NCBI GenBank assembly: GCA_013416795.1
Contig: RQSC01000028.1
Location: 651,138 to 687,890, forward strand
Length of the DNA stretch: 36,753 nucleotides
DNA from: Prasinococcaceae sp. CCMP 1430
Lineage: Eukaryota > Plantae > Prasinodermophyta
Direction of reading: 5' to 3'
Made by a program: the position numbers and the translations under genes. Shown in pieces: positions 1,381 through 31,375 of the stretch; position 1 is the first letter of the stretch, and the number at the start of each line of letters is the position of its first letter. Under the pieces are notes generated by a model. It did no database searches and had not been told where the DNA came from. It worked only from the letters and a program-made list of their open reading frames with translations.

Positions 1381-1467
1381 GCGCGAAGGGCGCTTGGCGG
1401 ACAGTGATAAGTAAGGCGCCGGTTTCAATTTTTCACTCATCGTGCAGCGAACACAGCAGAGCCCTCT

Positions 1468-4400
1468 TTACAGCTCCTCAGGGTGCTGCGGTGGATGTGG
1501 CTCCTGGGTGCGCGACAGCTGCGGCGGCGGAGGCCGCGGCGGCGGAGGCCGCTGCTGGCGATTCGGCAGCGGCGGCGGAGGCTGCGGCGGCGGAGGCTGC
1601 TGCTGGCGATTCAGCAGCGGTGGCGGCGGTGGCACCGGCCTACCTGGCCTCCGCGCCCGCCGCGACGCCTCGAAGGCCTGGCGGCGCTCGGCGGCCGCGC
1701 GCATTTGCTCCTCTTGGGCGACATCTGTTGGCCCGCGCTCCTCCGTGTCAATCTCTTGGAGAGCATCCGTCGCGTTGAGCTCGGATGCCTCATCTGCCTG
1801 ATCTGTCTGATCAGCAGAGCCTTGCTCGGAGGCGCTGGCCGCATCGGGCACGCTCAGGGTGCCGTCTGCCGGTGGCTCGGGCTCGATGCCACTGGCTTGT
1901 GTGCTTTGTGCGTTTGCCTCGGTCTCCTGAACCTCGGCCTGGGCTGCGATGCCCTCAGGCTCACCGGTGATAGCGGTGGCTGCCGTCGCCGCAGCGGCTA
2001 CAGCTTCCTCTGCTGGGCTCGTCTCGGCTGGCAACGCCTCGGTGGCCATGACAGCATCAGCGTCGGACTCGATCCCATCTTCAACGCGCTCCAGCTCGCC
2101 AGCGGTCGCAGCGGCGTCCGCCGTCTCGACTGCCGCCGTCTCGTCTGCCTCGGCTGCCGCCCCTTCCTCCTCAACACACTCCTCCGCTGCCGCCACCGCC
2201 TCGCCCGCCTCGCCCGCTCCCCCGTCCTCCTGGAGGCCTACCTCCTCGATTGCATCACCCGCCTCGACCGCCGCCCCGTGCTCTTCGAGGCCGTCCTCCA
2301 CGGCAGCCGCTGCCTCAGCCGCCTCAGTCGCAGCCGCAGTGCGCTCGAGCTCCGCCTCCTCGGCTTCCCGCGCGATGCGCTTCTCCTGGTCTGCAGCCTC
2401 TTCGGTGACCTTGACGGCCGCGGCCTCGGCCTCAAGGCGCTCCTGCTCGGCGGCAGCAGCGGTTGCAGCGGCAGCCTCGGCCGCAGCGGCTTGTTCCGCC
2501 TGGCGCTTCTGCGCGGACTTGGCTTTGACGGCCTCAATCGCTCGTGCATCTGCCTCAGCCTGCGCTGCTGCTAGCCGCTCTTCCTCCAGACGTTCGGCCT
2601 CGACCTCGTCAACTGCGTCTGGGACGCTTGCATCTGCGTCGGGAGCAACGCCGCTGCCCTCACTCCCGGAGGCCTCCAGGTCCACGTCGACCTTTGCAGC
2701 TTCGTCAGGCTGCTGTGCGGCGCTTTCGACGGCTCCGTCGCTCGCGGCATTCGACTCGACAGGATCGGCCTCGGCGCCATCCAATGGTGTGGGTGCGTCC
2801 GCATTGGCAACCGCCTCTGCACGCCCAGCGTCCGTGTCGACGATGGCATCGGGAGAGGAGTCGGTTCGCAACATCCCCTCAGCAGGCTCGGGGGGCGCCT
2901 GGACGTGCTCGAGCGGTGCATCTGCGACGGGCACTGCAGGTACTGGAGCAGCGGCCGGCGGTGGCTCCGCCGTCGTCGGATGTAGCAAGACACCTGGATA
3001 CTCGGGAAGAGCTGCGTATTGTGCGCGCAGATCGCTGACGACGCACTTCGGAATCCCCGCCGGCAGGCAGCCAGGTACGTATCCGTACCCGGCGTACAAT
3101 AGCCCCAGGGCCAACACCGAGGTGAGGAACGCGCAGTACAGCACGGCCCCGTTGAAGCCGAGCCTCGACGAAAACGCCACCGACAAAACCAGGGCACCCA
3201 CAGCAGCAGCGGCAAGCATGGGCAGGACCCTCATGCCGTGCACGACGGCGGCGCACGACATGGCGTCCGTCGTGCACTCGGTCATCACGGTCACGACGGA
3301 CGGCACGCAGTGCATCCGCGCGTGAGCGGCAGCACTGAGCGCTTCGCGTGCTTCGGGCCGAGCCGCCAGTCCCGCGGCGCCGATGCCGATGGCAATCATG
3401 AGCACGCTCAGCATGATGGTGAACGTGCGTTTGATCCCGCCGGCCTTCGCTCCAGAGGCGCTGCCAGAAACACCGGCGTTTGTCCCGGTCTCTAATGGCC
3501 CCGCCGGCGCCGGTGGTGGAGGCTTGGTCAGCGCCGCAACGCGTTCCTGTTGCTCCTGCATTGATGCGGGCGACGCACTCGTACGACCGCGTCTGCGCAG
3601 GTGCGACTGCGAAGGCGTACTTGCCGCGGCGGTGAATCCTGGCGGGGTCGAGGTGACCGGCGGCGCGGAAAACATGGGAGGCGGCGTGGTCGCAGCTGTG
3701 TCCGTCGCTGCCTGCACGGAATCGTTGGCCTCAGGCGCGGAGCTCGCCCCAGTGAGCGCTGAGTCGGACGTTGTTGCAGCACCAGCAGCGGTGGCGGGCG
3801 GTGGGGGCATCGCCACTGGCGGAGGCGCCATCGTGACGGCCCGCGGCGGGGCGGACACCGCAGTGTCCTCTGCCTCTGCTGCTGTGAGTGCGTTGTCGAC
3901 CCGCTGCGGCACAGCACCATCCGTCGCCGGTGCGCCCGTCACGTCGCTCTGCGCGCGTGCGCGGATGGTGCCCTCCTCCTGCTGCGCCGTTTGTGCCCTC
4001 GCTCGGTCAGCGGCGTGCCTCGCCGCTTCCGCCATGGAGCGCGCCTGGACCGCCGCGGCCTCAGCGGCCGCGTTCGTGCTCGCGTCCCCCGCGGACACGA
4101 CTCGGTTGCGCTCAAATGTTGCCGCGCGAGTAGGCGCATCACCAAGGCGCACGATGCACGCGCCGTGCAGCTCGTCGGCATCGAATTGGCCCTCGTACGT
4201 TGCGGGCGTCCCGCCCGCCGAGAGCGTACACACGCCCGCACCTGCCCGCTGGCCAGATCGCCATTCGCCGGCGTACCTGCGCGCAGCCCAATGCGTCAGC
4301 GCGCGCGTGCAGGCGGCCCAGGATAACCCCTGTGAGCAGGTTGACTTCGCGTGCTCGCGCACGCGCATGCACAGGCGCGCGAGCTCCGAACACCCTCACA

Positions 4401-4763
4401 CAGTGGGCGGCCGCAGCGGCACGCGCCGCGCCGCGCGACGTACGAGTTGCCTGCTGCCGACACGTACACTCCCACGCCCTCGGCCGCGCCGTCAGCAGCG
4501 GACCACTCTCCCGCGTACACCGACCCATCTGCGTCCACCTGCACGTGCAGTGGCTTCTCCCCCCCAGCATGCGCCACTGCGGGCGCCGCCGCCGCCGGCG
4601 CCGCACCCCGCTGCGCAACACCGCCCGCGTCCTCGCCGCCGGCGAGCGCATCCCGCCGATCGGCACCGTGCCGCGGGGGCTCAACCCGCCACCACGGCGA
4701 CCGCGCCTCTGCCCTCCCCCCCAGCCCCTTTTTTAATTTTATTTTCGGGGATTTTTCAGTCAT
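1468..4763 (-). CDS. MORN-repeat, multi-pass membrane protein with a long Ala/Glu-rich region and Pro-rich C-terminus; exons ~4763-4444 and 4276-1468
   Basis: MORN repeats YAGEWSAADGAAEGVGVY, YAGEWRSGQRAGAGVC and YEGQFDADELHG are joined in frame by a phase-2 GTACGT..CAG intron. Three hydrophobic segments follow. The start ATG at 4763 is the first plausible one and is uncertain. Confidence 0.75.
1505..1635 (-). repeat. 48-bp coding tandem repeat (~3 copies; 16-aa unit PPPPLxNRQQxPPPPx)
   Basis: CTGGCGATTC recurs at 1555 and 1603, and the translation shows the 16-aa periodicity. Confidence 0.85.
4277..4443 (-). other. Spliceosomal intron (167 nt, phase 2) in the MORN gene
   Basis: Donor TC|GTACGT, CTGAC branch-like site and acceptor GCAG|G. 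Splicing restores N-S-Y-A-G-E-W. Confidence 0.85.
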
Positions 4764-5002
4764 AATTCCGCGTAAACTCTTTTTTCTGTCTCTTGCCGGG
4801 CTGGCTGGCGGGAAGCTCGCCCGGACCGACCCACCCACCGCAGCATCGGGGATCGGTACGCGTCGGCGGGGCCCCTTTCGTGGGTCGTTTCCTGGGGTGG
4901 TGGCGAGCGAGCGGCGGGGCGCGCTCGCCTTCCGTCGCGGCTTCCATGCCGAAAATGATCCCACTTCCGAGCGACAGAAAGAAAGGATAGACCCTACAGA
5001 AC

Positions 5003-5011
5003 AAACCCTAA
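5003..5011 (+). promoter_or_regulatory. Telo-box (AAACCCTAA) in the MORN/IQCH divergent promoter
   Basis: Exact match to the plant telo-box consensus between two divergent genes. Confidence 0.45.
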
Positions 5012-5179
5012 TACCAACGCCAACGCCGTCGCCAAACCTTAACACTGGCGAGGACTGAGGGGGCGTTCCATAACGGTCGCACAGCGCGTGCGCGCGCGCG
5101 CGCGCGCCCGGCGCACCCGCCGGCCTACGCGCGGCGGTACGCGGCGGCAGGGCGGCGGGGTGAGGGCGCGGGCGCGGGC

Positions 5180-8100
5180 GTGGGAGGGCGATCGGGCCGG
5201 AGGGGCCGCGCCAAGCCCGCGGCGAGCGCGAGGGAGATCTCCGCCGCGCAGGACGTCGGCCAGGTGCTGCTCGACGCGCTCGCCGACCTGCGGGGGCTGC
5301 GTGACCACGCGGCCAGTGAGAGCACAGATGTGTACGTGCGCGCTCGTGCCTGCAACCGCACGCGCAATCGAGATCGCGACCGCATTCTGATGTGTGTGTG
5401 AGCGCTGCGCTGGCGTGCGCTGGAGCCCACCCCACGGGCGCTGTCACGCGGACCTCAGGAAGCATGGCACGCACGGCGCTCACACTAAGTCGCACGCGCT
5501 TGCAACTGCAGCGACCCACGCATGGATGCCGTGCTCGCTGAGGCCGAGGCACGGCTCAAGAAGCAGGCGGTGATTGTGTCTCGAGTGATACTCGACGGCG
5601 TCGAAGAGCGCGAGCGCGCCGAGCACAAGGCAGCCGCGGCGGGGGCGCCGCCCGCCCCTGCCGTGCGACGCGCCAAGATGTACGCCCAGAAGGAGGCCAC
5701 GCGGCGCGAGGAAGTTGAGGGCGTCATACGCGAGGAGCTGCTGCGCAACCCGCGCTCGGACATCGCGCGCGCGTACCTGCACGATACGTACGGCATCGCG
5801 CTCGGTGCGACGCTGCCGGCGGCGCAGCGTGGCGAGGCCGGCACTTTCGCAGCGACAAAGAGGCCACTGCCAGGAGGCCCTGCCCGCGGCAGGACCTTCC
5901 CTGCTAAGGCCACCGCGCCGCTCTCGGCGACCCTCCGCGCTAGCGACGACGACGATAACGCGCCAACTCCTAATGCCGCCGAATGCTTTCTTGATGAGTC
6001 GCTCCTCGCGACCGGAAAGGGCGTCTACGATCTGATCACGCGCGGTGCGATCAGGCACACGGTCGATCTGAGCGCAACGCTGAGCGGGCATGTGTCCACG
6101 GCCCAAGCCCAGCTACACAGGCCACCAAGTCGCTTCCAACGTGGCGCAGCCGCTTCATCTGGCAAGCAAACAGGTGCCAGCATGAATGCGGCCACGCTGG
6201 CCACCTTGCATCTTGACAAACGCGCGCTGGCCGAGCATGCACGAAAGGATCGCGACGCGTCCGTCGGAGTCCCTGCGGTGCCCGCGTCCGAGAGCACGAC
6301 CGCCGGCGGCGACGCCCGCGGCTTCGAGACGCTGCAGGACGCCTACTCGTTGCACCAATTCATGATTCGAAAGGGCGTGGCTATCAAGGGGACGCCCGAT
6401 TTTTCGAGCTTCGAGCGCGCGCATGCTTCCCAGTGGCAGCCCGTCGCGCGACTTATTCGAAGGCTCGAGGACGCGTGCAAGGAAGCGAAGGTGGGCGTGG
6501 TTCTCGTCGATGGAAAAGCACTGGCGGCGCTCGTGGACGCGTCCGGCGCAGTCGACGTCTCACCCGACGACGCAGCCCTCGTTGCGTGTATCGCCAACGA
6601 ATCAGGACGCGAGCTTCTTCAGTCGACGCTCGGTATCATCGCCGGGCCGACCGCTGCAGACCCTGAGATGGAGGCGAGCACGCGTGAGGCGAAGATGCAA
6701 CAAACGGAGCGCAACAATGCCGCACGCGTGATGCAGCGTGAGTGGCGGTTGTATGCACTGAGGCTTAATCTGCTGCGGCGCGCTGCCCAGAGGCGACTCG
6801 CGCGCCGCGCCACCTTTGCACGGCTGCAGAACGAGTTCTTCGAGCGCTGGGACGACTTGCGCAGCTCGCGGCGCGTAGTGGTGCACATACCTTCTGCGGC
6901 GGGCCGCTGCGGTGCCAGCGGAACCGACCCAGAGGCGCTCACGCGCCAAGGTGGCTTCATGTCTCGACTGTGCTGCGTGTCGGATCCGGATGTCGAATGC
7001 GTACTTGTGACACCCACGCGGATATCGGAGGACGTGTTGAGCTACTACGTGCGGTTGCTTGAGGCGGGCGGCTGCGACAACGTGCGCGCGCGAGTGTGCG
7101 TGGTGAATCCCGAGAATGCGCGACGCCTGCCGCCGGGGCTCAGTCTTGCCAAGCAGCTTCTGTGCTCGCCGGCGGCGCTCAAACGCATACGGACATTCTG
7201 TCGCGGGCGGGAGGCGTACATGGTCCCGCTCGAAAGCGGCGCAGACGAGATGGAGCTGTGTGTAGACCTCGGGGTGCCTCTGCTGGGGACCGATCCCGCG
7301 CTCGCGCAGACCTTTCGGCTGCAGAGCGCCGCAAGGGACATTTTTAAGGCTTCGCAGATGCCAGTAGCGCCTGGGCTGATGGGCGTGCGTAGCGAGGGTG
7401 AGCTGTATGTGGGGCTCGCGGAGCTCATGATCGAGCACCCGCGGACGCAACGATGGCTAGTGAAGCTGGAGGACGACACGCGCGGTAGTGGCCACATGTT
7501 CGTTGATGCGCATGCGATCAAACCGGTGGCGGACATTCTGGCCATCGTGAGCTCGAGCGCGAGGACGTACGCAAGCGGGCAGTCCGAGCGCACGGACGCG
7601 CTCGAAGGACTTGCCGCCGCGCTGCATCGCCACATGCCACGGTGCGCGACAATCGTGCGGCCGCATGGACACGTCAGAGCTGCGAGGCGCGCCGCAGCTG
7701 CGCGCGCGCGCGCGCATAGCTCCCACTCGCGCTGCGGCGGAGGAGGCGGTGGTGACGATATGAGCGGTCTCGAAGAGGTTTCGGAGGGGGGCGAGGGCGT
7801 TGGCATGGCTGAGGCCGACGGTCGGTGGCTTCCCCTCGCATACGTTGGGTACATGACATCTGTTGAGCGCGTGGGATGCGTGGTTGAGGCTGCGCCAAAC
7901 GAGGTGTTGGGCTCGCCTTCGGTGTCGCTGATGGTTGAGCCCACTGGGGACGTGCGCGTGCTATCCGCATGCGAGCAGCTGTTCTGCCCGCCGTATGTGT
8001 GCGTTGGTGCGAGCTTCCCGCAGTCGAGCGTGCCGCACAAGGCGCTGGCTGCTGCTGCTGAGGCTGTGGGCGTAACATGCCACAGCGTGGGCGCGATCGG

Positions 8101-8752
8101 CTACATCGGCGTGGACTTCGTAGCATCGTGCGAGGGGGGCGTGCTGAAGTTGTGGCCGATGGAGCTCCACCTGCGTCAGACGGACTCCCAGGCCATTTAT
8201 GAGTTGTTCGACTTTGTGGCTGCGGGCGAGTACGACCCCGAGGCCGGCGCCTACCGCGTGCCGAGTGTTGACTCCGAGGCTGCTCGCGCGCTCCTGTCGC
8301 GCGATAGAGCGCCGGCGCGAGGCACGGCGCTCGCCGCCACACCCACGAGCAGGCGCGCCTTCGCGGCCGCGCACCACGTGTCGCACCCCGCCATCTCGAG
8401 CCTGCTGTACGCCAACTTCATGCAAGACTGCCGCACGGAGAAAGTATGCTTCGACATGGAAGCCCGCTTGGGAACGGCACTGCATCTGCACGATTCATTG
8501 GCCGCGGGCGCGCTCGGTGTGCTCTGCGTCGCCTCGGAGCCGCGCGCGGCGTTAGTCGCGCTCACGCGCGCGATGGACTTCGTCGTCGCGCAGGTGGAGG
8601 CGCACGTCCGCCCAGGCGCTGCCACGGCCACCGCCGGGGCGCCTGCGGACGCGGAAGAGACGCCGCCCACGCTGCAGGCCGTGCACGGCACCCTGCGCTT
8701 CCTCTCGCAAAGTCTGAGCGAGCAGCCGGCGGTCGCCGCGCTGGCGGGGTGA
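5180..8752 (+). CDS. IQCH: IQ motif-containing protein H homolog; exons ~5180/5252-5331 and 5512-8752, start unresolved
   Basis: IQ-like AARVMQREWRLY, then RRVVVHIPS, SRLCCVSDPDVECV, PENARRLPPGLSLAKQLLCSP and VEPTGDVRVLS, as in IQCH. The upstream exon QDVGQVLLDALADLRGLRD resembles the IQCH N-terminal helix and splices in frame. Stop TGA at 8750-8752. Confidence 0.85.
5332..5511 (+). other. Spliceosomal intron (180 nt, phase 2) in IQCH
   Basis: Donor GT|GTACGT and acceptor CTGCAG|C; the join reads S-T-D-V-D-P-R-M-D-A-V. Confidence 0.7.
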
Positions 8753-8828
8753 GCGATCCCCCTTGGCCGGCACGCGCGTACCCTTTGCGCGCTGGAGGGA
8801 GCTGGAGGAAGCCTGCGGCCCGTCCTGC

Positions 8829-8833
8829 TGTAA
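8829..8833 (+). terminator. Putative TGTAA polyadenylation signal of IQCH
   Basis: TGTAA lies about 75 nt after the stop; UGUAA is the established chlorophyte poly(A) signal. Confidence 0.5.
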
Positions 8834-8883
8834 CACGATCACATCGAAGTGGCACACCCGCGTCCTCCGTGCAAAACAGTACG

Positions 8884-11169
8884 TTACGGAGCTGCACTAT
8901 GAGGGGTGATTTCGGGCAGCAGTGCCGCTGACTCGGAGTCGTTCGGCCGCTCCTCCTCATCACTGCACGCGCCGTCGTGGGCGTCGCCTGCTGCGGACGC
9001 GATGGGTGAGAGGGTGCTGTCACCGCCTCCACTGCGGCTACCCATGCTGCGGCTGCTGCTAATGCCTTCCTGCGATGGGCTTTCCACCAGGGTAGGCATT
9101 GTCACAAGTGCCTTGCCCGCGGGATGCGGTGGCGAGAACATCGCCCCGAGCATGCCCTGCTCCTCGTCACATGGCAGTGTTTGCGCGTGCCCCCTACCAT
9201 CAGTAGAGTCGCTGCCTTGGCCGGCCGATGACCGTGCATGCACGCCACGCGGCGGCGACATCGGGTCCGTGGCATCGTCGCAAAGTGGCGCGGGAAATGC
9301 CACGCTCAAAGCGACACCTGTGCCGAGGATAGCCGAGACGATTCCCAGTGAAGCTCCCACTGGCACCTTCACAACATCGGCAAGCGCGAGCACCATCTTG
9401 ACGCCAATGAAAAAGAGCGTGATGGCCACAGCGGGCTGCAGGAAGCGCGCGGAGGCGACTGCGTGGTGCACGAACGCGTACAGCGCACGCAGCGACAGGA
9501 TAGCAAACATGTTGCTGGTGTACACGACGAATGCGTCTTGTGTGATGCCAAACACGGCGGGGATGCTGTCCACCGCAAACACGACATCGGAGATCTCGAT
9601 CACAGCAACCACCAGCACAAGCGGAGTGAACCGGCGACGACCGGTAGGAGAGCGTTGCGCCGAAATGAAGTTGTCTCCTTCGTAGCGATCAGTCACGGGT
9701 ATGAGCTTGCGGCAGAGCTTCACCGTCCAATTGTCAGACAGATCGCCGTCGTCGTCGTCCCCGCCGTCGTCAAAGAGCAGCTTGATGCTGCTATACACCA
9801 GGATAAGAGCAAAGATCCCAAGCAGCCACTCAAAACGCTGCAGTAATGCAGCGCCCAAGATGATGAAGATGGCACGCATGATAGCGGCGCCAACGATGCC
9901 CCACGCGAGCGCCTTGTCCTGCGCGAAAGCGGGTACGCGAAAGTAGGAGAACACAAGGTTGAACACGAAAAGATTGTCTACCGACAGAGACTGCTCCACA
10001 AGGTACCCTGCGAAATACTCTGCAACGCTGCTCGGGCCTTTGTACAAGAACATTCCGAGGCCGAATATGGTGGACGCTGCCACCCAAAGCAGGAGTTTTG
10101 TGTGCGCCGCACCGCTGGCAGCGCTGCGCGCCACCACGGCAACGCCCCTGCCCACCGCGTTCGAGGCAGAACCCACGCGCTCGAAGCCACGGATGAAGGT
10201 GCTCGAGGCCACGCGGCTCAATCGGCGGATTCCACTCAGACGCGGCCGCGGCCGGCGCGGCGGCGGGAGGCTGAAGCGCAGAGCGCTCGGCACAAAGACG
10301 CGCAAGTTGCCCCAACCGTTCTTGCCAGCGTCTCCAGCACGGGCGCCCGCTTCTGCGCCTTCTTGCGAGGTGTTGGATGCTCGAGAGAGTAGCCTGGCGC
10401 CTTCGTCGTCTTCACCGTCTTCGCTCGCGCTGCTTCCCATGTATGGCAACATGTGAGGGTGATCGTCATCGCTGCTTTGTATCTCATGCTGAATGTCGAC
10501 CAGACGGAAGTCTTCCGCGTGCGCGGCGGCGCTTGCTGCTGTCGATGCCTGTTGGCGCTTGTGTTTGTCCCAGGCGTCCGTCGCCGCCGCTTCGCTTGCA
10601 ATGCTGCCATCGTAATTAACAGCCGAGTCTGAGTGCCCTATCGCGTCGTCGTTTGGTGGCGCGAGCGGCGCGGCGCCCTCGCTCGCCCCCCGTCCATCTC
10701 GCACATCAACTCCGACTTCTGCCTGGAACTCGGAGTGCGGGCCTGCCTCTACAATTTCACCGGGAGGTGGACAGGATCCGCCGCGTGGCGCGGCGAATGC
10801 ATTTCCGCCATCGATGTTGTTGGCGCTTCCTCTTCGACGGAGGCTTTCGCGAGTGAGCAGTCCTCGTTCGGCTGCAGTCGCGCCGCCACCGTCGAGCATT
10901 GCGCCGGCGCTCTTTGTTCGCCTCGAGCCGCGCTTCGCGCCGCCGGCGGACGCCCTTATGCGCGCGCCGCCGCTGTGCCGCCGCCGCAGAGAACGACGCG
11001 CACGGGAGTCACTGTCGCTACTACCCTCAGAGTGGCCTGAGCTGTTGCCGAGCTCCTCATCTGAGCTCAACGCCGACTTGACGAGCAGCTCGCCCGAGCC
11101 GGCCTTGCAAAATCGCGACGCGGCTATCACCGCGCGCGCGGCCGCGCGCAGCCGCCTGCCGCGACGCAT
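8884..11169 (-). CDS. TERC: TerC/Alx-family integral membrane protein (plant TERC-like core) with long disordered N- and C-terminal extensions
   Basis: EYFAGYLVEQSLSVDNLFVF, IEISDVVFAVDSIPAVFGITQDAFVVYTSNMFAIL and LQPAVAITLFFIGVKMVL. The first credible ATG is at 11169. The frame also runs from a CAG acceptor at 11218, so an upstream exon may exist. Confidence 0.9.
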   Translation of the reverse strand: MRRGRRLRAAARAVIAASRFCKAGSGELLVKSALSSDEELGNSSGHSEGSSDSDSRARRSLRRRHSGGARIRASAGGAKRGSRRTKSAGAMLDGGGATAAERGLLTRESLRRRGSANNIDGGNAFAAPRGGSCPPPGEIVEAGPHSEFQAEVGVDVRDGRGASEGAAPLAPPNDDAIGHSDSAVNYDGSIASEAAATDAWDKHKRQQASTAASAAAHAEDFRLVDIQHEIQSSDDDHPHMLPYMGSSASEDGEDDEGARLLSRASNTSQEGAEAGARAGDAGKNGWGNLRVFVPSALRFSLPPPRRPRPRLSGIRRLSRVASSTFIRGFERVGSASNAVGRGVAVVARSAASGAAHTKLLLWVAASTIFGLGMFLYKGPSSVAEYFAGYLVEQSLSVDNLFVFNLVFSYFRVPAFAQDKALAWGIVGAAIMRAIFIILGAALLQRFEWLLGIFALILVYSSIKLLFDDGGDDDDGDLSDNWTVKLCRKLIPVTDRYEGDNFISAQRSPTGRRRFTPLVLVVAVIEISDVVFAVDSIPAVFGITQDAFVVYTSNMFAILSLRALYAFVHHAVASARFLQPAVAITLFFIGVKMVLALADVVKVPVGASLGIVSAILGTGVALSVAFPAPLCDDATDPMSPPRGVHARSSAGQGSDSTDGRGHAQTLPCDEEQGMLGAMFSPPHPAGKALVTMPTLVESPSQEGISSSRSMGSRSGGGDSTLSPIASAAGDAHDGACSDEEERPNDSESAALLPEITPHSAAP

Positions 11170-11217
11170 GGCGAGCGTGGCGCGGCGGGCGGCAGCGCCA
11201 GCACCCACCGATCGCGG

Positions 11218-11218
<1 letters not shown>

Positions 11219-11274
<56 letters not shown>
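11219..11274. repeat. Perfect (TG)28 microsatellite
   Basis: Read directly from the sequence. Confidence 0.98.
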
Positions 11275-11275
<1 letters not shown>

Positions 11276-11493
11276 ATGGGTTTCGCTTTTGCTGACACGC
11301 ACACGGGTACACACACACGCCCTCGCTCGTGCATCCACTCGCGCACCCTTCCGCCGCACACAGGTGGTCGCGGGCGACGGCGAGCAGGCGCCCCTGCGCG
11401 TGGCGCTGCGCGGCGCGGGCTGGGCGCGCGGCGCCTTCGTCGTGGGCGGCGACGCTCCGCCCCCGGGCGCGCGCGACCCCGTCCTCGCGCACG

Positions 11494-11698
11494 GTGAGTG
11501 TGTGTGTGTGTATTGTGCGTGTGTGTGCGCGCATGCTCCTGCGCGCGCACGCGCATCACTCTGAGAGCGTATGTGTCGCTGTCACCGCCCGCGCCAGCGC
11601 GTGCATTTTGTGTTGTTGACGACCACTGACACACGCGCGGTCGCACACACACACATACACATACGCGCGCGCGCGCACACACACGCATGCACACACAG
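11494..11698 (+). other. Spliceosomal intron (205 nt, phase 1) with TG-rich 5' end and CA-rich 3' end
   Basis: GTGAGT donor, CACAG acceptor, and a perfect 17-bp inverted repeat at 11516-11532 / 11671-11687. Confidence 0.85.
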
Positions 11699-11919
11699 CT
11701 GACGGCGAGGGTGTGCTTGACGCGGACTCCGACGCCGAGCACGAGGTGGTCCTCACCCTCCCCGGCGATCTGGCGCCCGGCGAGGCCGCCGAGGCGAGCC
11801 TCTTCGTGGGCAGCCTGCCGAACGCCCCCGCCGCCGCAACCTTCGAGCTCGGCGCGGTGACGGAGGCGGCCGCGGCGGCGGGATGGAGCGTCTCGGCGGG
11901 GCAGGACGGCGGCCTGAAG

Positions 11920-12125
11920 GTGTGTGTGTGTGATTGTGTTTGTGTGTATGATTGAGTGTGTGTGTGTGTGTGTTTGCAGGTCCATGTGTGCCTCCGCCGC
12001 CCTTCGCTTCGATGTGTGCGTGCATGTGTGAAGGTGCTTGCCATTGACACGCACACACACACATACACATACACACACATACGCGTGCACACACACACAT
12101 ACACACACATGCAACGCACTCGCAG
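11920..12125 (+). other. Spliceosomal intron (206 nt, phase 0) with TG-rich 5' end and CA-rich 3' end
   Basis: AAG|GTGTGT donor and TCGCAG acceptor; the join reads G-L-K-G-S-A-Q-P-G. Confidence 0.75.
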
Positions 12126-12833
12126 GGCTCGGCGCAGCCCGGCTCCCGCGCGGTCATCGCCTTCGCCTTCGCGCCGCCCGCGACCGCTGCCGGCGGCGCC
12201 GTCGGCGGCCGGGGTCCTGGCCGGCCTGGCCGCCCGTGCCAGTGGGGCCGCACGCGCGGGTCAGCAAGGTGGCGACAGAGATCTCGTCAGTAGCCGCCCC
12301 CTCGGGGCCGGCAGGCCCGCCCGGGGGCGGGCGTCACGGGGGCCGCGCTCTGCAGTGCGCACTGTGGTGTCAGCGGCGCTGCGCGCGGCGCCACCAATGT
12401 TTTCGCCTGGATTTTTTTTTTTGGCCGTGCTAATTTTTGCGGGCGAACGTGCAAGGCCGCGCTCGGCGGCGCCGGGTGCCACAGTGCCGCCGCCAGGTGC
12501 AACAGTGTGCGCGACCCTCGCCCTCGTCCATGCCCCTCCCCGCCACCTCGCCCTTGACGTGACGTCCTTGGAGGCGCCGACCCCGGCGCGAGGTGCCGGG
12601 CTACGTCGCTTGCCATACTTGCCGCCTACGGACGTCGCGGTCTCAGGCGCGGTCGGGACTTGGCGTGGATGACACCCCCCACACGCAACGGTGCACCGCG
12701 CACGGTGCCGCTGGGCTCATGTGGTAGCGCGGGCGTGCTCGCCCCGTGGCGCCGCCGGCGCACTCTGGGGTGTGTGCACCGCATGGTCTCTATTTTTTTT
12801 TTTTTTACAGTGGGCGCTCGGCGGCCCCGCCGC

Positions 12834-14189
12834 TCAATGGGTGAGCTTCTCTTTCTTGGTCACCTCGAGGATCATGGGCGTGAGGTCCTTCCCCTGCGCC
12901 GCCCACTCGTCCATGCAGGCCTTGGTGTAGTCCTCAAACATGCGCTCCTCCTCATCGAGGATCTGGCGCGTGACGCGCGCCTCCTCAAGCGCCTGCGCCT
13001 TGGCGGCCTGCTTCCTGCGCGCCTTGCGCTCGATCTGCTTGAAGTGGTAGCTCTGCAGCGCCTTGGCCTTGTCCACTTGCGCCAGGCGCGCTGCCTCGTC
13101 CTCCTTGGCGAGGCGCTCCGTTCGCGCCTTCCACTGCTCGATGAACTCCTTCTCCTCGCGCTTCTCGACCGCGCGCCTTGCCGCGCGGATCTGCAGCTGC
13201 TGCTCGCGCGAGCGGTCGATGGCGTCCATCTCCTGGCGGCGGAACTCGGCCATCAGCTCGTCGTGCGCCTCCTGCTCCTTCTGCTTGGTGTCGGCCTGGT
13301 TGGCCAGCTGGTCTTCGCGCTCCGCCTGCAGCCTTAACAGCAGCGCCTGGTGCTTCTCTACCATGGCGTCGCGGAGGCGATTCTTCTCCGCGGTGGTCTC
13401 CTCCTCGTACCTGCGCCGCTCCGCCATCATTGCCTCCTTCTTGGCTACGTACGCCTCGATCTGCGCGTCAGCCTCCTTGTCCCGGCGCAGCTCCTCGGCC
13501 TTGTGGCGCTTCAGCTCCAGGTTGACCTTCATGGTGGCCTCGTTGGCCGCCTTAGCGCGCGCGCGACGAGCCTCATCCTCTTCGCGCATGAGCGCGCGCT
13601 CCTTGACGTCCCTCTCCAGGAGCTGGCGCCCGGTCTCCATCCGCTCGGCCCTCTCTGCGAGGATGGTCTGCCTGAGCTCATTGAGCTGCTCGTCCTGTAT
13701 CTCACGCTGCTTGAAGGCCTTCTCCATGCGCACCTGGATGGCGGCGAGCTCCTTCTGCTCGGCCTCCTCAAGTGCCACGCGCTGGGCGACCACGAAGCGC
13801 TCCTCTCGCACCTGCTCGCGACGCGCCACCTCGCGCTTGTACGCGATCTGAGCCTCCCTCTCCTTGAGCACATCCGACAAAAGCAGCCGCGAGTGGAACT
13901 TCTTCGTGCGGTCCGTCTCGTCGTACAGCCGCTTGTTGGCGCGCTCGATAAGGTCGCGGCGCTGCGCGCGGCGCAGGGCAGCCTCCTCGGCATCGATCTC
14001 CTTTCGCTTCTCCTCCTCCTCGGCGAGGCGGCGGGCGCGCTCGGCGCCCTCCGCCCTTCGCTGCCCCTCGATGGTATTGGACCACTTTGAGGCGCGCGTC
14101 TTGGACATCTGCTGCAACGACACGCGCTGCACGACACCGCGTGCGTTGGGTGCGGGAGGCGGCGAGGGGGGCGGCGCATATGTCAGCAT
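12834..14189 (-). CDS. CFAP210: Cilia- and flagella-associated protein 210 (CCDC173)-like trichohyalin-plectin-homology coiled-coil protein; 5' end uncertain
   Basis: SKWSNTIEG..RANKRLYDETDRTKKFHSRLLLSDVLKEREAQI matches CCDC173/FAP210 (..KNFHSGLLLSRVMKERDAQI), followed by a long E/R/K/A coiled coil. CTGAC plus CAG sites near 14185-14110 suggest a further upstream exon. Confidence 0.8.
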   Translation of the reverse strand: MLTYAPPPSPPPAPNARGVVQRVSLQQMSKTRASKWSNTIEGQRRAEGAERARRLAEEEEKRKEIDAEEAALRRAQRRDLIERANKRLYDETDRTKKFHSRLLLSDVLKEREAQIAYKREVARREQVREERFVVAQRVALEEAEQKELAAIQVRMEKAFKQREIQDEQLNELRQTILAERAERMETGRQLLERDVKERALMREEDEARRARAKAANEATMKVNLELKRHKAEELRRDKEADAQIEAYVAKKEAMMAERRRYEEETTAEKNRLRDAMVEKHQALLLRLQAEREDQLANQADTKQKEQEAHDELMAEFRRQEMDAIDRSREQQLQIRAARRAVEKREEKEFIEQWKARTERLAKEDEAARLAQVDKAKALQSYHFKQIERKARRKQAAKAQALEEARVTRQILDEEERMFEDYTKACMDEWAAQGKDLTPMILEVTKKEKLTH

Positions 14190-15384
14190 CACGTCGCCCA
14201 CCACAAGTCACCGGCCTACCCGTCCCCACGCGCTTCGAGCACGCCTCTGAGCGAATGCGCGCACGCGTCGCCGCGGCGCGAAACGCTCACGGCCGCCCCC
14301 GCGCAGCAGTGCGCGTCGTGCAGAGCGGGCGAGGGCGCGCGCGCAGCTCGCGTGCGAGAGCACGTGCGCAAGCACACCCTCCCTTCCGCTAACCACACCG
14401 CTGCCGCCTCTCGCTGACCCCTCGCCCACGCCCACCCCCTTACCCTGCCCACACCTAACCCCCAACCCACTCGGGGAACACAAGCGCGCGCCCGGCTCGT
14501 GCGCACTCGCGCGCGCGCCCGCGGCTCGTCCCCTCCCTCGCCTGCATTCTCCCCAGCCCCCGCGCCCTCCCTCAGCAACTCACCCGCCACGGCACCTCCC
14601 TCTACCCCTCCACCGCACGCGGCGCCGCTTCCCCGCCCGCCCGCCGAGGGGTGGTGAGGCGCGCTGGTGAAGGGGGTTGGGTCCCCCCTCTCTGCCAGCG
14701 GCTGCGCGCGCGGTTCCCCCGGCGACGGCGCGCGCGCGCGCCGGGGAACCGCCCCGATACCAGTCGCACACGTTCTCGATTCTCGCACCAATAATACATT
14801 CGTTCTGAAGTCATACGTACCCACGGGAGGCGACGTGTTTGCGTTTGTTTGCGATGTGTGCTCGCGTGAACGTTGGCGCACGTGTCGTCGACCGCAGCGG
14901 CGTGAGTGCCGCGGCACCCCCGTCCGCGAGGCGAGCCGAGCCTCCGTCCGTGTGCAGGCGGGCGCTGGCCGTGTGAGGGCGTGATGATGAGGCTCGCCAT
15001 CGACAGCGCCGCGCACCCACCAGCCAGCCGGCCGCGCGCAGGTCCCCCCCCCTCCGATCCCGGCGCGCATTGGTTGGCGCGCGGCGAGCGACGCGACGCG
15101 ACGCGGGCGCGAGTCGCGCGGCCGGCCTCTCCCGCTGCCGCGGCGGGGAGCGCGCGCGGTCGCGCAGTTGACAGCAAGTACGCAGCGCACGTCGGCCCCA
15201 CGCGTCACTCTTCCCCGCCGCAGCGCGCAAGCGTCCCGGCCGCAGCGCAGAGCCCGCGCCGCTTTGGGCGCGCGCGCGCGCCCCACTCACTCGCGCGCCG
15301 GATGCGGCGCGCGCCTGCGTTTCGACCTCCCCAACCAACGGAAGGCGCCCGCACCCCGCCCATTTAGGGTCAACTCTGTAAGGG

Positions 15385-16867: not shown

Positions 16868-17473
16868 ATGGCGTCGCGTCGCGGGAGGCAACGGCACGGT
16901 CGGTGGCGTGCGAGGGGAACAGCGCCTGCGCTCGCGCTTGCGCTCGGGGCTGCACTCGTGCTCACGGCGCGGTGGGCCGCGGCGCCGGCGCGGTGCGCGG
17001 CGGAGCCCGAGGCGCACGCGGCCCTCGCGGCAGAGTTGGCTGCGGAGCGCAGGCATGCAGCGGCCGCGCTCGATGCGATGCGGCCGGGGGGCGGTGGCGG
17101 CGGGCCTGTGACAGCGACCAGGATGCCCGCGAGGCGTGGGGCGGCGCCGCCGCCACCCACGCAATGTGGCGTGTGCCAGGCAGCGCTCGCGTCCGTCCGC
17201 GAGGAGCGCGACGCACTTCGCGCCGCCGCTGCCGCCGCTGAGCGGACAGGTGCAGCCCGCGCCCGGTGCGTTAGAGCAGCGACAGGAGCAGCAGCATGGG
17301 GGCGATGCGGACGGCGGCGGCGCCTCGCACGAACACACACATCGGCCGACGACGACCACCGCCGCTTCGGAGGCGTCGCCAGCGGGGAGCAGCTACATAT
17401 CGCTCATGCAGACCATGCGACAGCACCCATCGAGCTCGGAGTTCGTGTACCTCCGGCGGGTGGGCAGCGGTAA
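16868..17473 (+). CDS. Possible small signal-anchor/coiled-coil ORF, or an upstream exon of the dynein gene
   Basis: GCCATGG start context, a basic N-terminus, a hydrophobic segment PALALALGAALVLTA and a CxxC followed by a helical segment. It overlaps the dynein frame. Confidence 0.3.
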   Translation: MASRRGRQRHGRWRARGTAPALALALGAALVLTARWAAAPARCAAEPEAHAALAAELAAERRHAAAALDAMRPGGGGGGPVTATRMPARRGAAPPPPTQCGVCQAALASVREERDALRAAAAAAERTGAARARCVRAATGAAAWGRCGRRRRLARTHTSADDDHRRFGGVASGEQLHIAHADHATAPIELGVRVPPAGGQR

Positions 17474-20400
17474 CGGCGGTGCCGGGGGCAAATTGCCTGC
17501 GTACAACCCGTACGCGCTCGAGGTTGTGCCCTTTGCGGCGGTGGACGAGTCCGACTTCTGCACGATGAGCGCTCGCGGCGTCACGCACTACCTCGGTGGC
17601 CGGAGCACCGACTTCACGACGCTCGAGCAGTGGGAGCGCGAGTACCAGCTCTTCAACGCCGTCTCCACGCTCGGTGTCTTCCGCAAGTACCGCGCGTGGA
17701 AGAGCTTCAGCGTGTGGCGGCGCGGCGTGCGCCTCAGCAAGATGCGGCGCGCGCAAAAGGCCCTCAAACGCAACCTCTTCCACCTGGATTCGGCGTTCCA
17801 GGCGCCGCTGCAGGAGATTCGCGGGCTGTGCCACGGCATGCAGAGCATTCGCCTGCACAGGCTGCGCGGGGGCGTGCTGTACACGCTGGATAAGTTCGTG
17901 CAGGAGCAGCGCGAGCAGCGCGAGCACGTGAGCGAGCGGCTGGTGGAGTTCTCTCGCGCGTGCTTCGGTCACGCGCGTCAGGCTTGCGCGGATGCGCTGC
18001 AGCGTCAGGAGGACTACCTGAACGACTTTTACAGCAAGGACGACGAGGACAAGCTGGACGCCACGCACCGACGCGCGCCCCGCCAAGTTGGCGACATCAA
18101 CGTGGCTGCCGCGGCCAAGGCGGCGTTCGAGGCGTCCGCCGAAGCCTACGCCTACACCATCGCCGCCGCGCGCCGCTCGGAGCAGCGGCGCTTAATGAAC
18201 TTCATCCGTATGGCGGACTACATGATCTGCAACACGCTCATCGAGATTCTGATTGAGTCCATCTCAGACATCCTCATTGTGATGGCCGATCATGGCGGCG
18301 ACGACGGGAACGCCACGCCACGCACGAAGGTCGTGCGCCAGCAGCTGCGCAGCTCCATCATGCAATCGGAAGGGAGCCCGGAGGGCAACCTCCGCGCGTC
18401 CGTTACGGCGCCCGGCCTCGGTGGGACGTCGGGCGGCGGCGCGGCCACTGCGGGCGACGACGCGAAGGAGGAGCACCCCGCAATCTTTGAGGTCGAGATT
18501 CTCTTCGAGGACCGCGAGCTCGTGTTCCACCCCTCCACGGATGAGTTTCAGTCAAGGGTGGACGAGGTGCTCGGAGGCTTCGTGGACACAATTGGCTCGA
18601 TGGGCCTGCTGGCTGCCAACGAAGAGCTCATCAAGATGGTCGCGCAGGAGGGTGAACAGGGCGACGTGTCGGTCGTCACGGACCTCATCGAGGACGAGAC
18701 GCACCAGAATCTGGCCTTGCGCGTGAAGGAGAGTCTCGCGCTGGCGTTTGACATCGCCGAGGAGTACAAGTCGGTCTTCATTCCCTACCAGACGATGGTG
18801 CTCGAGAATGAGACGCTTGACATCGCGGGCATGAAGGCGGGCTACCAACGAAACGAGGTCACGCAGGACCAGTTCCGCGAGGACGTCGCGCGTTTCTCCG
18901 ACCAGCGTGCGATGATTGAGGCGATCGACACCGACGCGTCGGTGGGCATCATCAAGGTGAGCTCGGCCAAGCTACGCGCCACCTTCCTGCCCAGCCCGAT
19001 CAAGTGCCTCGAGGAGCTGCACGTGATGCTGCCCAGCCTGGCAAGCGAGCTGTACCAAAACTTCATTGCCGTGGTGCACGACGCCACTGCGCGTCTGTCC
19101 AGGCAGCTGTCGTCTGCGGAGGACTTCGTCGACCAATTAGGCTTTCTGACCGAGGTGCAGGAAGGCTGGAAGGACACCGACGACAAGATGCTGGAGATCA
19201 AAAACCTCATCGAGCTGATTCAGGGAGCGTCGATTCCCATCCCCGAGCTCGACCACGCTGCCTACCAGACGCTCACGCCCGACTTCAACACGCTCAAGGG
19301 CGCGATTGACGACGCGGAGGCCGCCAAGGAGGACAACATCGCGCGATTCAGCGGCGACCTCGCGCATGGGGTCGAGCAAGTGAGCCGCGAGGTGTCGGAC
19401 ATCCGCAACCGCGCGCAGCACGAGATGATACTCGACGAGCACGCCGACGTGGGCGAGGTCATCAAGTACACCACCGAGCTCTCGACGTTGGTCAAAGCGC
19501 AGGAGGCTGCCGCGAAGCGCATCGCGGGTTTTGAGAGGCTCTTCAAGGTGCCTGAGTCGCAGTTCGAGGACCTCGTCGAGTGCGCCGAGGAGGTAGAGCT
19601 CAAGCGCTCCCTCTGGGTCGGGCTGCGGGAGTGGAGCGAGGTCACCGAAGGATGGCGAGCACAAAAATTCTTCGAGCTCAACGATTCTGAGCTCGACGAG
19701 AAGGTGCAGCGCTTCACTAAGCTCAGCTTCAAGGTGGAGCGCGGGCTACCCTCGAACCGAGTGGTCCCCAAGCTCAAGGACGCCGTCGAAGACTTCAAGC
19801 ACCTCGTGCCCTGCATCAAATCGTTGCGCAACACCGCGCTCAAGGATCGCCACTGGAAGAAGATCGAGGAGGCGATGGGCACCGCGCTGACGCGCGACGA
19901 AAACTTCACGCTGGGGGTCCTGCTGGACCTCAAGATTATGGAGCACATGGACGCTATCGGCGCCATCTCGACCGAGGCCACGCAGGAACAAGCACTCGAG
20001 GAGCTCATGCTCAAGGTGCAGAGGAAGTGGGCGGACATCGAGTTCGTCGTGAGCCCTTACAAGGACACAAAGGACGTGTACATCCTCGGCAGCCTGGACG
20101 ACATCATGGTGGCACTCGAGGACTCGATGGTGACCATGACAACCATCCTGGCGAGCCGTTTCGTCAGCGGCATCCGCGCCGAGGTCGACAAGCTCAACCG
20201 CCAGCTGCGGCTCTTCTCCGACACGCTCGACGAATGGACGGCCGTGCAGAAGACGTGGATGTACCTCGAGTCTATATTCTCAGCGCCCGACATCCAGCGG
20301 CAGCTGCCCAACGAGTCCAAGGCCTTCTTCTCTGTCGACAAGTCGTACCGCGATATTATGCGCCGAGTGCGCGACCGCCCGAGCGCGCTGCAGGCCGGCA

Positions 20401-23400
20401 CCACGCCGGGCTGGCGCGAGCAGTTTCAGAAGAGCAACGACACCCTTGAGCGCGTGCAGAAGCAGCTCGAGGACTACCTCGAGACCAAGCGCATGGCGTT
20501 CCCGCGCTTCTACTTCCTGTCGAACGACGAGCTGCTCGAGATCCTCGCGCAGACGAAGAACGTGCAGGCCGTGCAGCCGCACATATCGAAATGCTTTGAC
20601 GGAATTGCCAGCCTCGACTTCGGGGACGACCCTAAGTCTATCGATATCTTCGCTATGCGCTCCGCGCAGGGGGAGCGCGTGTCGCTCGGCAAGAACCTCA
20701 AAGCGAGGGGGAACGTCGAGAGCTGGCTCGGGCACGTCGAGGCAGCAATGCAGTCGTCGCTGAAGAAGCTGACCAAGCAGTCGTACCAGGACTACGCCGC
20801 GCAGGAGCGCGCGCACTGGGTGCTCAACCAAGCCGCGCAGATCGTGCTGATGGTGTCGCAGATCTACTGGTGCTGCGAGGTGGAGCAGTGCTTTGGCGAG
20901 AACGCGGCCAAGGCGCTAGCCGCCTTCGCCAAGACGAATGTCGACCGCCTCAACGAGCTCACCGCTCTCGTGCGCGGCCAGCTGTCCAAGCTCGAGCGCA
21001 AGATCATCGTGGCGCTCATCACAATCGACGTGCACGCGCGCGACATCGTGCTGAATCTCGTCAAGGAGAAGGTCGACGCGGCCACTGACTTCAACTGGCA
21101 GATGCAGCTGCGCTACGCGTGGTCTGAGTCCGAGGAGATCTCGCTCGTCCGCCAGGTGAACGCCGAGTTCAACTATGCCTACGAGTACCTCGGCGCGCAG
21201 TCACGCCTCGTGGTCACGCCCATGACGGACCGCTGCTACATGACCCTCACTGGCGCGCTGCACCTGAAGCTCGGCGGCGCGCCCGCAGGGCCAGCGGGCA
21301 CTGGCAAGACTGAGACAACAAAGGACTTAGGCAAGGCGCTCGGCGTGAACTGCGTCGTCTTTAATTGCGGCGACACGCTGGACGTGACTTTCATGGGCAA
21401 GTTCTTCGCCGGGCTGTCCCAGTGCGGCGCGTGGGCATGCTTCGACGAGTTCAACCGCATCGACATCGAGGTCCTGAGTGTTGTGGCGCAGCAGCTGCTC
21501 ACCATTCAGAACGCGCTGCAGGCGGGCGTGTCCAAGTTCATGTTCGAGGGGCGCGAGATTAGGCTCGTCCCCACGTTTGGGGCGTTCATCACAATGTGCG
21601 GAGATGTTTTGCTGCTTGTTTCGCGTTTTGTGCATTGTTGTTGTTGGCGCGCGCGTGTGAGCCGGCGGCCGCCCGCGCGCAAACAGCCCCTGGCGCTCTC
21701 GCCTCGCTCAGTCGTGGCGTGTATCGCCATCAAAATGCAATGCGATGCGCGCGGCGCCGCCGCCCCCCCGCCCTCTCCATCTCCCCCCCCAATCTTGTAC
21801 CAATCTTGTAGGAACCCGGGCTACGCAGGCCGCACAGAGCTGCCAGACAACCTCAAGGCTCTCTTCCGCCCGATGGCGATGATGATCCCCGACTACGCGC
21901 TCGTGGCCGAGGTCATGCTCTTCGCCGAGGGCTTCGAGAGCGCCAAGAAGCTCTCGAGCAAGATGGTGAAACTATACAAGCTGTCATCGGAACAGCTCAG
22001 CCAGCAGGCGCACTACGACTTTGGCATGCGCGCTCTGAAGTCCGTGCTCGTCATGGCCGGCTCGCTGAAGCGAGCGTCGCCCGACCTCAGCGAAGACATC
22101 GTGCTCATCCGTGCCATGCGCGACAGCAACATCCCTAAGTTCCTCAAAGAAGACGCTCTGCTGTTCAACGCCATCGTGGGCGATCTGTTTCCCGGTGTCG
22201 AGGTACCCGCCCAGGACTACGGCAGCCTCGAGGTGGCCATTCGCGATCGCCTGCGCGAGAACGCGTTGCAGGAGCGCGAGCCGCAGATCGCCAAGATCGT
22301 CGAGCTCTTCATGACATTCAACGTGCGCTTCGGCGTGATGGTCGTCGGGCCCACCGGCGGCGGCAAGTCCACGGTGCACCGCATCCTCGCGGAGGCCATG
22401 ACCTCGCTGCGCGAGAAGGGCGACCCCGACGAGCGCTACCAGGTGGTGCACACGTCTCCGCTCAACCCCAAGTGCATCTCGATGGGCGAGCTGTACGGCG
22501 AGTACAATGAGCTGACCGGCGAGTGGTCGGACGGCCTGGCGTCCACCATCATCCGCAACGCGGTCACCAACACGGCGAACGATCGCTTCTGGACGCTCTT
22601 CGACGGGCCTGTCGACGCCATCTGGATCGAGAACATGAACACGGTGCTGGACGACAATTGCACTCTCTGCCTATCGAGCGGCGAGCGCATCAAGCTCAAT
22701 CCGACCACGCAGCGCATGCTCTTCGAGGTGAACGACCTGGCGGTCGCCTCACCTGCGACCGTCTCGCGCTGTGGGATGGTGTACCTGGACGCCGATGATC
22801 TAGGCTGGGAGCCATTCGTGCGCACCTGGGTGGATAGCAAGCTCTGCGGCGGCCTCCTCACGCAGGACACGAAGGACTTCGTGTACAACGAGCTCTTCGT
22901 CAAGTTCCTGACGCCCGCGCTGCGCTTTGTGCGGCGCAACTGCGGCGAGGGCATCCCGTCGGTAGACATCAACCTCGCGGCGAGCTGCACGAGCCTTGTC
23001 ACCGCGCTGGTGAACCGCTCAATCGACACGAAGCGCCCTGAGGAGGAGCTGCACCCGACGCTCGCGGCGATCTTTTCGTACGCGCTCTGCTGGTCGGCTG
23101 GCGGAAACATAGCCGAGTCGGACCGCGAGGCGTTTTCCGACTTCCTGCGCGACCTCATGAGCGACTCGCCTGCGCCCTTCCCGCCCAGCGGCGAGGTGTA
23201 CGACCACGTGGTCGACGTGCGCGTGGACGCATCGGAGGGCGGTCTCATGACGGCGGAGTTCCGGCCCTGGAGCGAGCTGGTGGAGCCGTTCAAGTTCGAC
23301 ATGGACGCGCCGTTCTTTTCAATGCTCGTGCCCACTGTGGACACCACGCGCTTCTCGTACCTGCTGGAAGTGCTCATTGAGGCCGACCGCAGCGTGCTGT

Positions 23401-29649: not shown

Positions 29650-29700
29650 CTCTCTCTCTCTCTCTCTCTTACACACACACGCACACACACGCACACACAC
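29650..29700. repeat. Compound (CT)n-(CA)n microsatellite between convergent 3' ends
   Basis: Read directly from the sequence. Confidence 0.9.
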
Positions 29701-29777
29701 GCACGGCACAGTCGCAGAATGAATCAGTTTTGAATTGTGTACAGATGGCTGGCCGCCTCTGGCGGCGTGCGCGTCCC

Positions 29778-31229: not shown

Positions 31230-31261
31230 CGCGGCGGCGCGCGCGGCGCGCGGCGCCCCTC

Positions 31262-31285
31262 GTGTGGCACACACACACACACACG

Positions 31286-31328
<43 letters not shown>

Positions 31329-31375
31329 GTGTACACACACACACGCCCACACACGCACGCACGCACACACACGCC
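31262..31375. repeat. Interrupted (CA)n/(TG)n microsatellite upstream of the transporter start
   Basis: Read directly from the sequence. Confidence 0.9.

Follow-up and report, generated by a model that had tools for sequence, protein, structure and literature searches.

The 36,753-nt stretch of DNA analyzed here (contig RQSC01000028.1 of Prasinococcaceae sp. CCMP 1430; hereafter, the window) carries, at positions 11219–12189, a patch of 971 nt that is a copy of an internal stretch of a CFAP74 gene and stands in place of 24 native nucleotides next to a TerC gene. The structure of this patch, its donor, both of its junctions, and the empty site are established, as is the fact that independent data lack the patch. 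Private to this assembly, the patch is on balance probably an assembly artefact rather than part of the alga's genome. The copied fragment runs from a 145-nt 3′ part of an intron through exons A and B, each followed by an intron, to 85 nt of a terminal exon (Table 1).

Table 1 Features in and around the patch, in window coordinates (L, contigs from other data sets; X, contigs of runs labelled as the same organism)
Feature	Position	Strand	Evidence or remark
TerC gene	8884–11169	−	One uninterrupted ORF, ATG at 11169, stop at 8884–8886; Pfam TerC 1.3e-46
Native TerC 5′ leader	11170–11218	−	X1 rec1 reaches ~11215; L010–L016 match up to 11218
Patch	11219–12189	+	24 nt at the same place in seven contigs; spacing in X7 rec5 agrees
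CFAP74 intron, 3′ part (145 nt, ends CACACAG)	11219–11363	+	blastn matches start at 11218–11235 in L001, L002, L004, L007, L009, and L018
(TG)28, microsatellite internal to the CFAP74 intron	11219–11274	+	TRF; TG-rich tracts at the same intron place in relatives
CFAP74 exon A (43 codons + 1 nt)	11364–11493	+	Identity to related contigs, third-position bias
CFAP74 exon B (221 nt)	11699–11919	+	98.3% identity to related contigs, no gaps
CFAP74 exon C, first 85 nt of the terminal exon	12126–12210	+	L018 and related contigs
21-nt identity CCGGCGGCGCCGTCGGCGGCC	12190–12210	.	Present both in the donor exon and in the native flank of TerC
Native spacer from TerC to the TPH-domain gene	12211–12833	.	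L010–L016 and X7 rec5 collinear from 12190
TPH-domain (trichohyalin-plectin homology) gene, upstream neighbour of TerC	12834–14204	−	Pfam TPH 3.1e-16

The patch contains coding exons of a CFAP74 gene

A preceding sequence-only reading of this DNA had pointed to a plus-strand acceptor, CACACAG/GTG, that opens three CFAP74-like exons. The sites are present (CACACAG/GTG at 11363/11364, followed by CACG/GTGAGT…CACACAG/C and AAG/GTGTGT…CGCAG/G), and the exons are real coding sequence. For comparison we used nine related contigs (L001–L009) from ENA metagenome assemblies, eight of the nine being Tara scaffolds, which were reached via the cluster of a 90-aa ORF, P0001. Relative to these contigs the window differs by 1.7–4.2% in the exons and by 8.3–9.6% in the introns, the latter with many indels; exons B and C are free of indels, and the exon mismatches distribute over codon positions 1, 2, and 3 as 8, 17, and 50. 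Exon A alone shows 95.8% overall identity to the related contigs, against about 91% for introns, and is ungapped in all six full-length matches. The low exon divergence, the lack of indels in exons B and C, and the excess of third-position mismatches thus support both the exon–intron structure and the plus strand.

In the related contigs, a very long ORF (L002, 1702 aa; L007, 1583 aa) is followed immediately, on its own strand, by the homologues of exons A–C. These parent ORFs (L002:3-5108 and L007:1-4749) match the Pfam families Ig_CFAP74_1st (1e-32), 4th (1e-25), and 3rd (4.5e-16). Judged from its sequence, the parent gene of the window exons is a true CFAP74 orthologue, and the label ‘CFAP74-like’ is borne out for that gene by its Pfam CFAP74 Ig domains. 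For the window exons themselves, the assignment comes mainly from synteny with the parent gene. Pfam searches with each of the three exons singly returned no match. In pairwise comparison, exon B aligned to residues 1622–1680 of P0062, a distant CFAP74 homologue (E 1e-4), and exon A gave a weak match to residues 1575–1592 of the same protein (E 0.03) that is collinear with that of exon B. Among 1.84e9 proteins searched with phmmer, P0001 (95% identical to exon B) was the sole true relative; matches of exon B to bacterial fn3-repeat proteins were spurious, resting on ‘LPNAPAAP’ linkers only. A search with the 1702-aa parent ORF for an annotated CFAP74 protein of P. coloniale recovered environmental relatives only.

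The CFAP74 coding content of the window amounts to 145 codons (436 coding nt). The about 170 codons counted previously include, as the last 26 of the third exon, read-through into the TerC flank. In L018 the terminal exon encodes 98 aa and is closed by a TAA stop; the ~70 donor codons that follow position 12210 are missing from the window. Also missing are the first 1700+ codons of CFAP74, the start, and the native stop, and a complete CFAP74 gene with a start, >1,000 codons, and a native stop is not found at this locus. By blastn and tblastn of the window, we found no other CFAP74 exon upstream—as the sequence-only reading had stated—and neither a second copy of the patch nor any other CFAP74-like sequence. 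Rfam searches over the whole window gave no matches. With so much of the gene missing at either end, the CFAP74 patch is non-functional, and we saw no sign of its transcription.

Introns of the window open with GT-rich runs and close with CA-rich runs ahead of the AG. Those at 11494–11698, 11920–12125, and 29672–31372 begin with (GT)n and end with (CA)n, forming complementary arms of 50–76 nt at 72–86%. Owing to these complementary ends, such introns look intron-like on both strands; for those of CFAP74, the plus strand is fixed by the canonical GTGAGT/CAG sites and the codon-position bias. A contig spanning exons B and C (X1 rec2; 11654–12210, probably RNA) keeps the 206-nt intron 11920–12125 and 45 nt of the preceding intron, and could represent pre-mRNA or DNA carry-over. 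Among the contigs compared, no spliced form of the (GT)n…(CA)n CFAP74 introns is reported.

One junction is blunt, the other lies in a shared 21-mer

The left junction coincides with the first base of a perfect (TG)28 array and is blunt, with homology absent at the join. TG-rich tracts occur at the equivalent intron position in L001, L002, L004, L007, and L009. To the left of the tract, the related contigs carry the preceding exon (…EDVLE; EPDREYEHYEDVLE/gtgcgtgcc) and then the TG-rich intron; at the same place in the window, the TerC leader is butted onto the first TG. The CFAP74 contigs match the window only from 11218–11235 through 12210. By this alignment, (TG)28 lies wholly within a CFAP74 intron, and 11219–11363 is the 3′ part of that one intron. 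Any role of the microsatellite may have been to halt the copying, not to recombine with a second repeat.

A second breakpoint is found at 12210, in the middle of the terminal CFAP74 exon and remote from any TG/CA tract. Here, the junction falls inside the 21-nt identity between donor and target, a sequence with a single occurrence in the window at a tolerance of up to three mismatches (0.06 expected). Being common to both loci and unique in the window, this 21-mer argues that the right junction made use of the identity. All related contigs that reach beyond 12210 read TCGCGGCGCTGGGCATCGACGCGTGG there, with the frame remaining open for ~70 more codons to a TAA; the window reads GGGGTCCTGG instead, and the departure of the related contigs from it begins with TCGCGGCGCTGGG. 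No public gene call spans 12210. At the patch we found neither terminal inverted repeats (TIRs) nor a target-site duplication, the repeat search yielding TG/CA microsatellite matches only; the target shows a loss of 24 nt.

The sequence-only reading had taken the TG tract for an inversion breakpoint or a misjoin. That DNA foreign to the TerC locus is joined at the left edge of (TG)28 has held up, and a misjoin came close to what we find; the second break, at 12210, had escaped it. Rather than an inversion, the layout is that of a 971-nt insertion which replaces 24 nt and has its second break in an exon.

Environmental contigs and other data of the species carry the empty site

Seven contigs (L010–L016) show 24 nt (AACCGCCCCGCGCGCGCCGCGAAA) between 11218 and 12190, in place of the 971 nt; over the seven, this empty-site sequence is AACCGCCC(C/A)GCGCGCGCCGCGAAA. 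The contigs were obtained on the TerC side via the cluster of a 99% identical TerC protein; their sources are Tara metagenome assemblies and the Logan contigs of ERR11733668, ERR11733670, and SRR22824306. Over 5127–11218 and 12190–14645 their identity to the window is 98–99%, and the TG tract is absent at the empty site in all of them. JGI metagenome contigs, a collection without this locus, matched neither the right junction nor the empty site that served as a positive control. In the native state, TerC and the TPH-domain gene are consequently separated by a spacer 947 nt shorter than that of the window.

More broadly, marine metagenome contigs from Tara and others (L010–L017) compared with 5127–14645 were 98–99% identical over 6–8 kb, with no other large indel. 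This near-identity implies that ocean samples contain close relatives of the cultured strain, which offer a ready control on the assembly.

We further compared contigs from runs labelled as the same organism and distinct from the assembly's own reads. Date and organism label make it probable that X7–X9 are the Illumina runs deposited in 2024 for the mutation-accumulation study of CCMP1413 (PMC11884799); X1 is probably the MMETSP transcriptome of CCMP1413. One X7 contig (rec5; 8702 nt) has zero mismatches to the window over 9900–11208 and 12190–12900. The 34 letters between 11208 and 12190 in this contig are made up of ten masked bases (11209–11218) plus 24, and the contig thus has the length of the empty site. 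To the right of 12210, the depth of X7 equals that of rec5 alone (32.5); with the depth fully accounted for by one contig, the X7 read graph has no branch to the window junction. Both insertion junctions are therefore absent from X7 as well as from the seven other contigs. In X7–X9, 0.98 of the sampled words were present in each, a shortfall consistent with missing junction words.

The donor, in turn, is present in these runs. A second X7 contig (rec8; 1259 nt), at a depth of 42 that corresponds to the single-copy level, carries the patch sequence with no mismatch in its unmasked parts, departs from the window at 12210, and runs 297 letters further. Likewise, X1 rec2 departs at 12210, where its loose end (TCGCGGCGCTGGG) reads as CFAP74 canonically continues in the related contigs. 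Taken together, rec8 and X1 rec2 show that an intact 3′ end of the donor exists in the same organism. It had been proposed that the rearrangement decapitates CFAP74, and that a reciprocal junction elsewhere, or trans-splicing, should follow. With the continuation past 12210 found in same-organism runs and in the related contigs reaching it, nothing is decapitated and no reciprocal junction is expected; with the flanks collinear and the CFAP74 3′ end intact elsewhere, neither a reciprocal junction nor trans-splicing is called for.

TerC lacks an intron at the junction, and the patch has probably distorted a gene model

The TerC ORF matches Pfam PF03741 (1.3e-46) over residues 386–594 of the frame 11169..8887, and two public P. 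coloniale proteins, P0044 and P0045, agree with it at 100% identity; the TerC part is also the same as in the EukProt model PRCOL_00006447 (Prasinoderma coloniale). On the strength of this identity we take the genome to be that of P. coloniale. The patch sits 49 nt upstream of the TerC start codon. On the minus strand, (CA)28-G/CCG opens into TerC without a stop (ORF 8884..12114), which had been read as an intron acceptor in frame with TerC. The letters and the open frame are as described; the acceptor is not supported, the TerC ATG lying 48 nt downstream. The frame carries no weight, since it is stop-free by chance in DNA of 69% GC (65–72% in the window). For an intron 3′ end at 11218 on the minus strand, we found no upstream exon, donor, or spliced transcript. 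Instead, a TerC contig that is probably RNA (X1 rec1) ends at ~11215 with no further exon attached, which disfavors use of an acceptor at 11218; this end may mark the start of transcription. Nor do two intron 3′ ends stand back-to-back here, as had been supposed, the TerC side of the empty-site form having neither a CA tract nor an intron.

The stop-free frame at 8884–12114 (−), 1076 aa in length, leads from TerC across the CA tract and then traverses the entire patch in antisense, and exemplifies how easily very long false ORFs arise in a genome of 69% GC.

Public proteins bear on both forms of the locus. P0044 consists of an M followed by 777 residues identical to the TerC frame of the window (‘M-PRSVG…’; 11217–11220, −). 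The codon before CCG is CAG in the window and TTG in the empty-site form, which suggests that the P0044 record derives from the empty-site form, the putative alternative start TTG being written as M. PRCOL_00006447 (P0045, 1186 aa; ~11156–12380, −) fuses the TPH-domain gene to TerC across the patch, by way of a small exon (AKTLVAPRAAPLTPQ) followed by an ‘intron’ in which the entire patch is lost together with the TerC ATG. This fusion is probably an annotation error induced by the patch.

Elsewhere in the window, an uninterrupted ORF of 4125 aa encodes a dynein heavy chain (17136–29513, +; Pfam DHC_N2, AAA_6 to AAA_9, and Dynein_C), and an IQCH-like ATP-grasp gene (5522–8752, +) lies near the dynein heavy chain and TPH-domain genes. 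Dynein, IQCH-like, and TPH genes form a run of cilium-type genes that are mostly intron-free; the alga is described as lacking flagella (PMC7455551).

Origin of the patch

We infer that the join was probably made by software rather than by the cell. To produce it, a sequence walk or patch would start in the native right flank, switch into the CFAP74 locus at the common 21-mer, proceed leftwards, and stall in the (TG)n microsatellite, whereupon the stalled end would be butted onto the TerC flank. Favoring an artefact are the empty site in seven contigs, including Tara metagenome assemblies, and X7, which with zero mismatches in the flanks has the empty-site spacing and no junction branch. The donor is intact in the same organism, and the patch is 100% identical to X7 rec8, itself at single-copy depth. 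Further points on this side are the two joins (one in a 21-mer unique in the window, the other blunt at the start of a microsatellite), the loss of a very GC-rich native 24-mer, the lack of public gene calls spanning 12210, and the first M of P0044, which fits the TTG of the empty-site form only.

Set against this are the way the reference was built and the shape of the lesion. The published P. coloniale reference (CCMP1413; 25.3 Mb, 69.8% GC), from which the window may derive, was assembled from PacBio reads with NextDenovo, Arrow, and NextPolish, and is described as 22 chromosomes, with raw data in CNSA under CNP0000924 (PMC7455551). This published pipeline has no gap-filling step, and would not normally create 1-kb patches (PMC7455551). 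Moreover, the sequenced culture was raised from one cell (PMC7455551), so that a private variant would have become fixed, and cellular break repair, too, gives homology on one side and, on the other, a blunt join with a small deletion.

Less probable than an artefact, with less than an even chance in our estimate and yet well worth considering, is a real insertion private to the clone: templated ‘filler DNA’ introduced as a double-strand break was repaired in the promoter of TerC or where its transcription starts. By this route, 24 nt would have been lost, and the right end would have invaded the last exon of CFAP74 via the 21-nt identity; ~970 nt would then have been copied leftwards, with exit in (TG)n and joining without homology, and the insertion would be limited to the sequenced single-cell clone. 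The pairing of a 21-nt identity with a blunt join, the 24-nt target deletion, and a donor that is intact and 100% identical all agree with such an event. So do the single-cell cloning of the reference culture (PMC7455551), a long-read pipeline that is an unlikely source of such a patch (PMC7455551), and the position of the site, which is ~3 nt off the point where X1 rec1 ends and transcription may start. However, the insertion is absent from X7 and from all wild-population contigs, and 971 foreign bases would separate TerC from its upstream. In addition, the report on mutation accumulation in CCMP1413 gives, for 25 lines, nine small indels and one duplication, and mentions no such event (PMC11884799).

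If the patch is real, it might also be one case of an active process in P. coloniale, in which breaks at gene 5′ ends or transcription starts are mended with stray DNA, copied or captured, of bacterial origin or out of genes of the alga itself; we think this unlikely.

Capture of a gene fragment by a transposon (of the Pack-MULE or Helitron type) or a retrocopy would account for a gene fragment at a foreign site. The lack of TIRs and of a target-site duplication, together with the retained introns, leaves both only a very slight chance. In place of a duplication the target has a 24-nt deletion, no second copy exists in the window, and the introns are kept with no poly(A).

Comparably improbable is a complete small gene of ~190 aa with a plus-strand ATG at 11168 and a first intron from within (TG)28 to 11363. 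The window does offer an ATG at 11168–11170, an in-frame GT donor at 11222, and a stop at 12288–12290. Yet the exons reproduce an internal stretch of CFAP74 verbatim and break off in mid-exon, and the tail past 12210 is arginine-rich read-through; Pfam gives no match, X1 has no contig over 11213–11616, and its contig for exons B and C belongs to the donor locus. The sequence-only reading had named such a gene, starting near 11168, as an outcome that would overturn it; what the exons represent is a cut internal CFAP74 piece.

The faintest prospect of all is an inversion or translocation via intronic TG/CA microsatellites by which an intron of TerC became fused to one of CFAP74. In its favor, an acceptor-like (CA)nCAG faces TerC in an open frame, and the upstream CFAP74 exon is missing from the window. 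Against it, TerC is intronless and begins with an ATG of its own, the empty-site form contains no CA tract, a second break follows after just 992 nt and falls within an exon, both flanks are collinear in all other sources, and the canonical CFAP74 continuation is found in the same organism.

Implications

A third phylum of green plants has been proposed for which this genome serves as the reference, and it is used in arguments on gene content, flagellar genes, and gene transfer. The patch has probably already distorted its annotation, with PRCOL_00006447 joining the TPH gene and TerC over it. Apparent gene fragments, split genes, and foreign inserts in the assembly hence need checks at the level of reads before they are given a biological reading. 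The empty-site test, which draws on Tara contigs and other runs of the species, is applicable to other suspect fragments. Should the patch prove real, it would be a clean and very recent case of templated break repair with an identifiable donor; and were the active process true, it would offer a route for the shuffling of gene fragments and the entry of bacterial DNA in an early-branching green lineage.

Comparison with known systems

CFAP74 (cilia- and flagella-associated protein 74) is a large axonemal protein with multiple Ig domains, and the parent gene in the related contigs resembles it in having the 1st, 3rd, and 4th of these domains; exons A and B of the window are collinear with the C-terminal region of the distant 1805-aa homologue. 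The window differs from such a gene in holding 145 of >1,900 codons, and is a fragment rather than a gene. With Pack-MULE or Helitron capture and processed pseudogenes, the patch shares a piece of a host gene at an ectopic site; unlike them, it has no TIRs, target-site duplication, or hairpin ends, keeps its introns, and comes with a target deletion.

Templated, or ‘filler DNA’, insertions at repaired double-strand breaks have been described in plants and yeast. The patch displays an intact ectopic donor, junction homology, and a small target deletion, the features by which such insertions are recognized: the donor has been copied and left intact, homology is confined to one junction, the target deletion is small, and the size is about 1 kb. 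It departs from them in being found in no read set examined.

An assembly patch or gap-fill chimera is at odds with the published pipeline of the species, which uses long reads only (PMC7455551). In its other properties, the patch is like such chimeras: it combines an exact 21-mer join with a blunt join at a microsatellite, a GC-rich stretch has been lost, the inserted sequence is 100% identical to its source, and the join is absent from independent reads.
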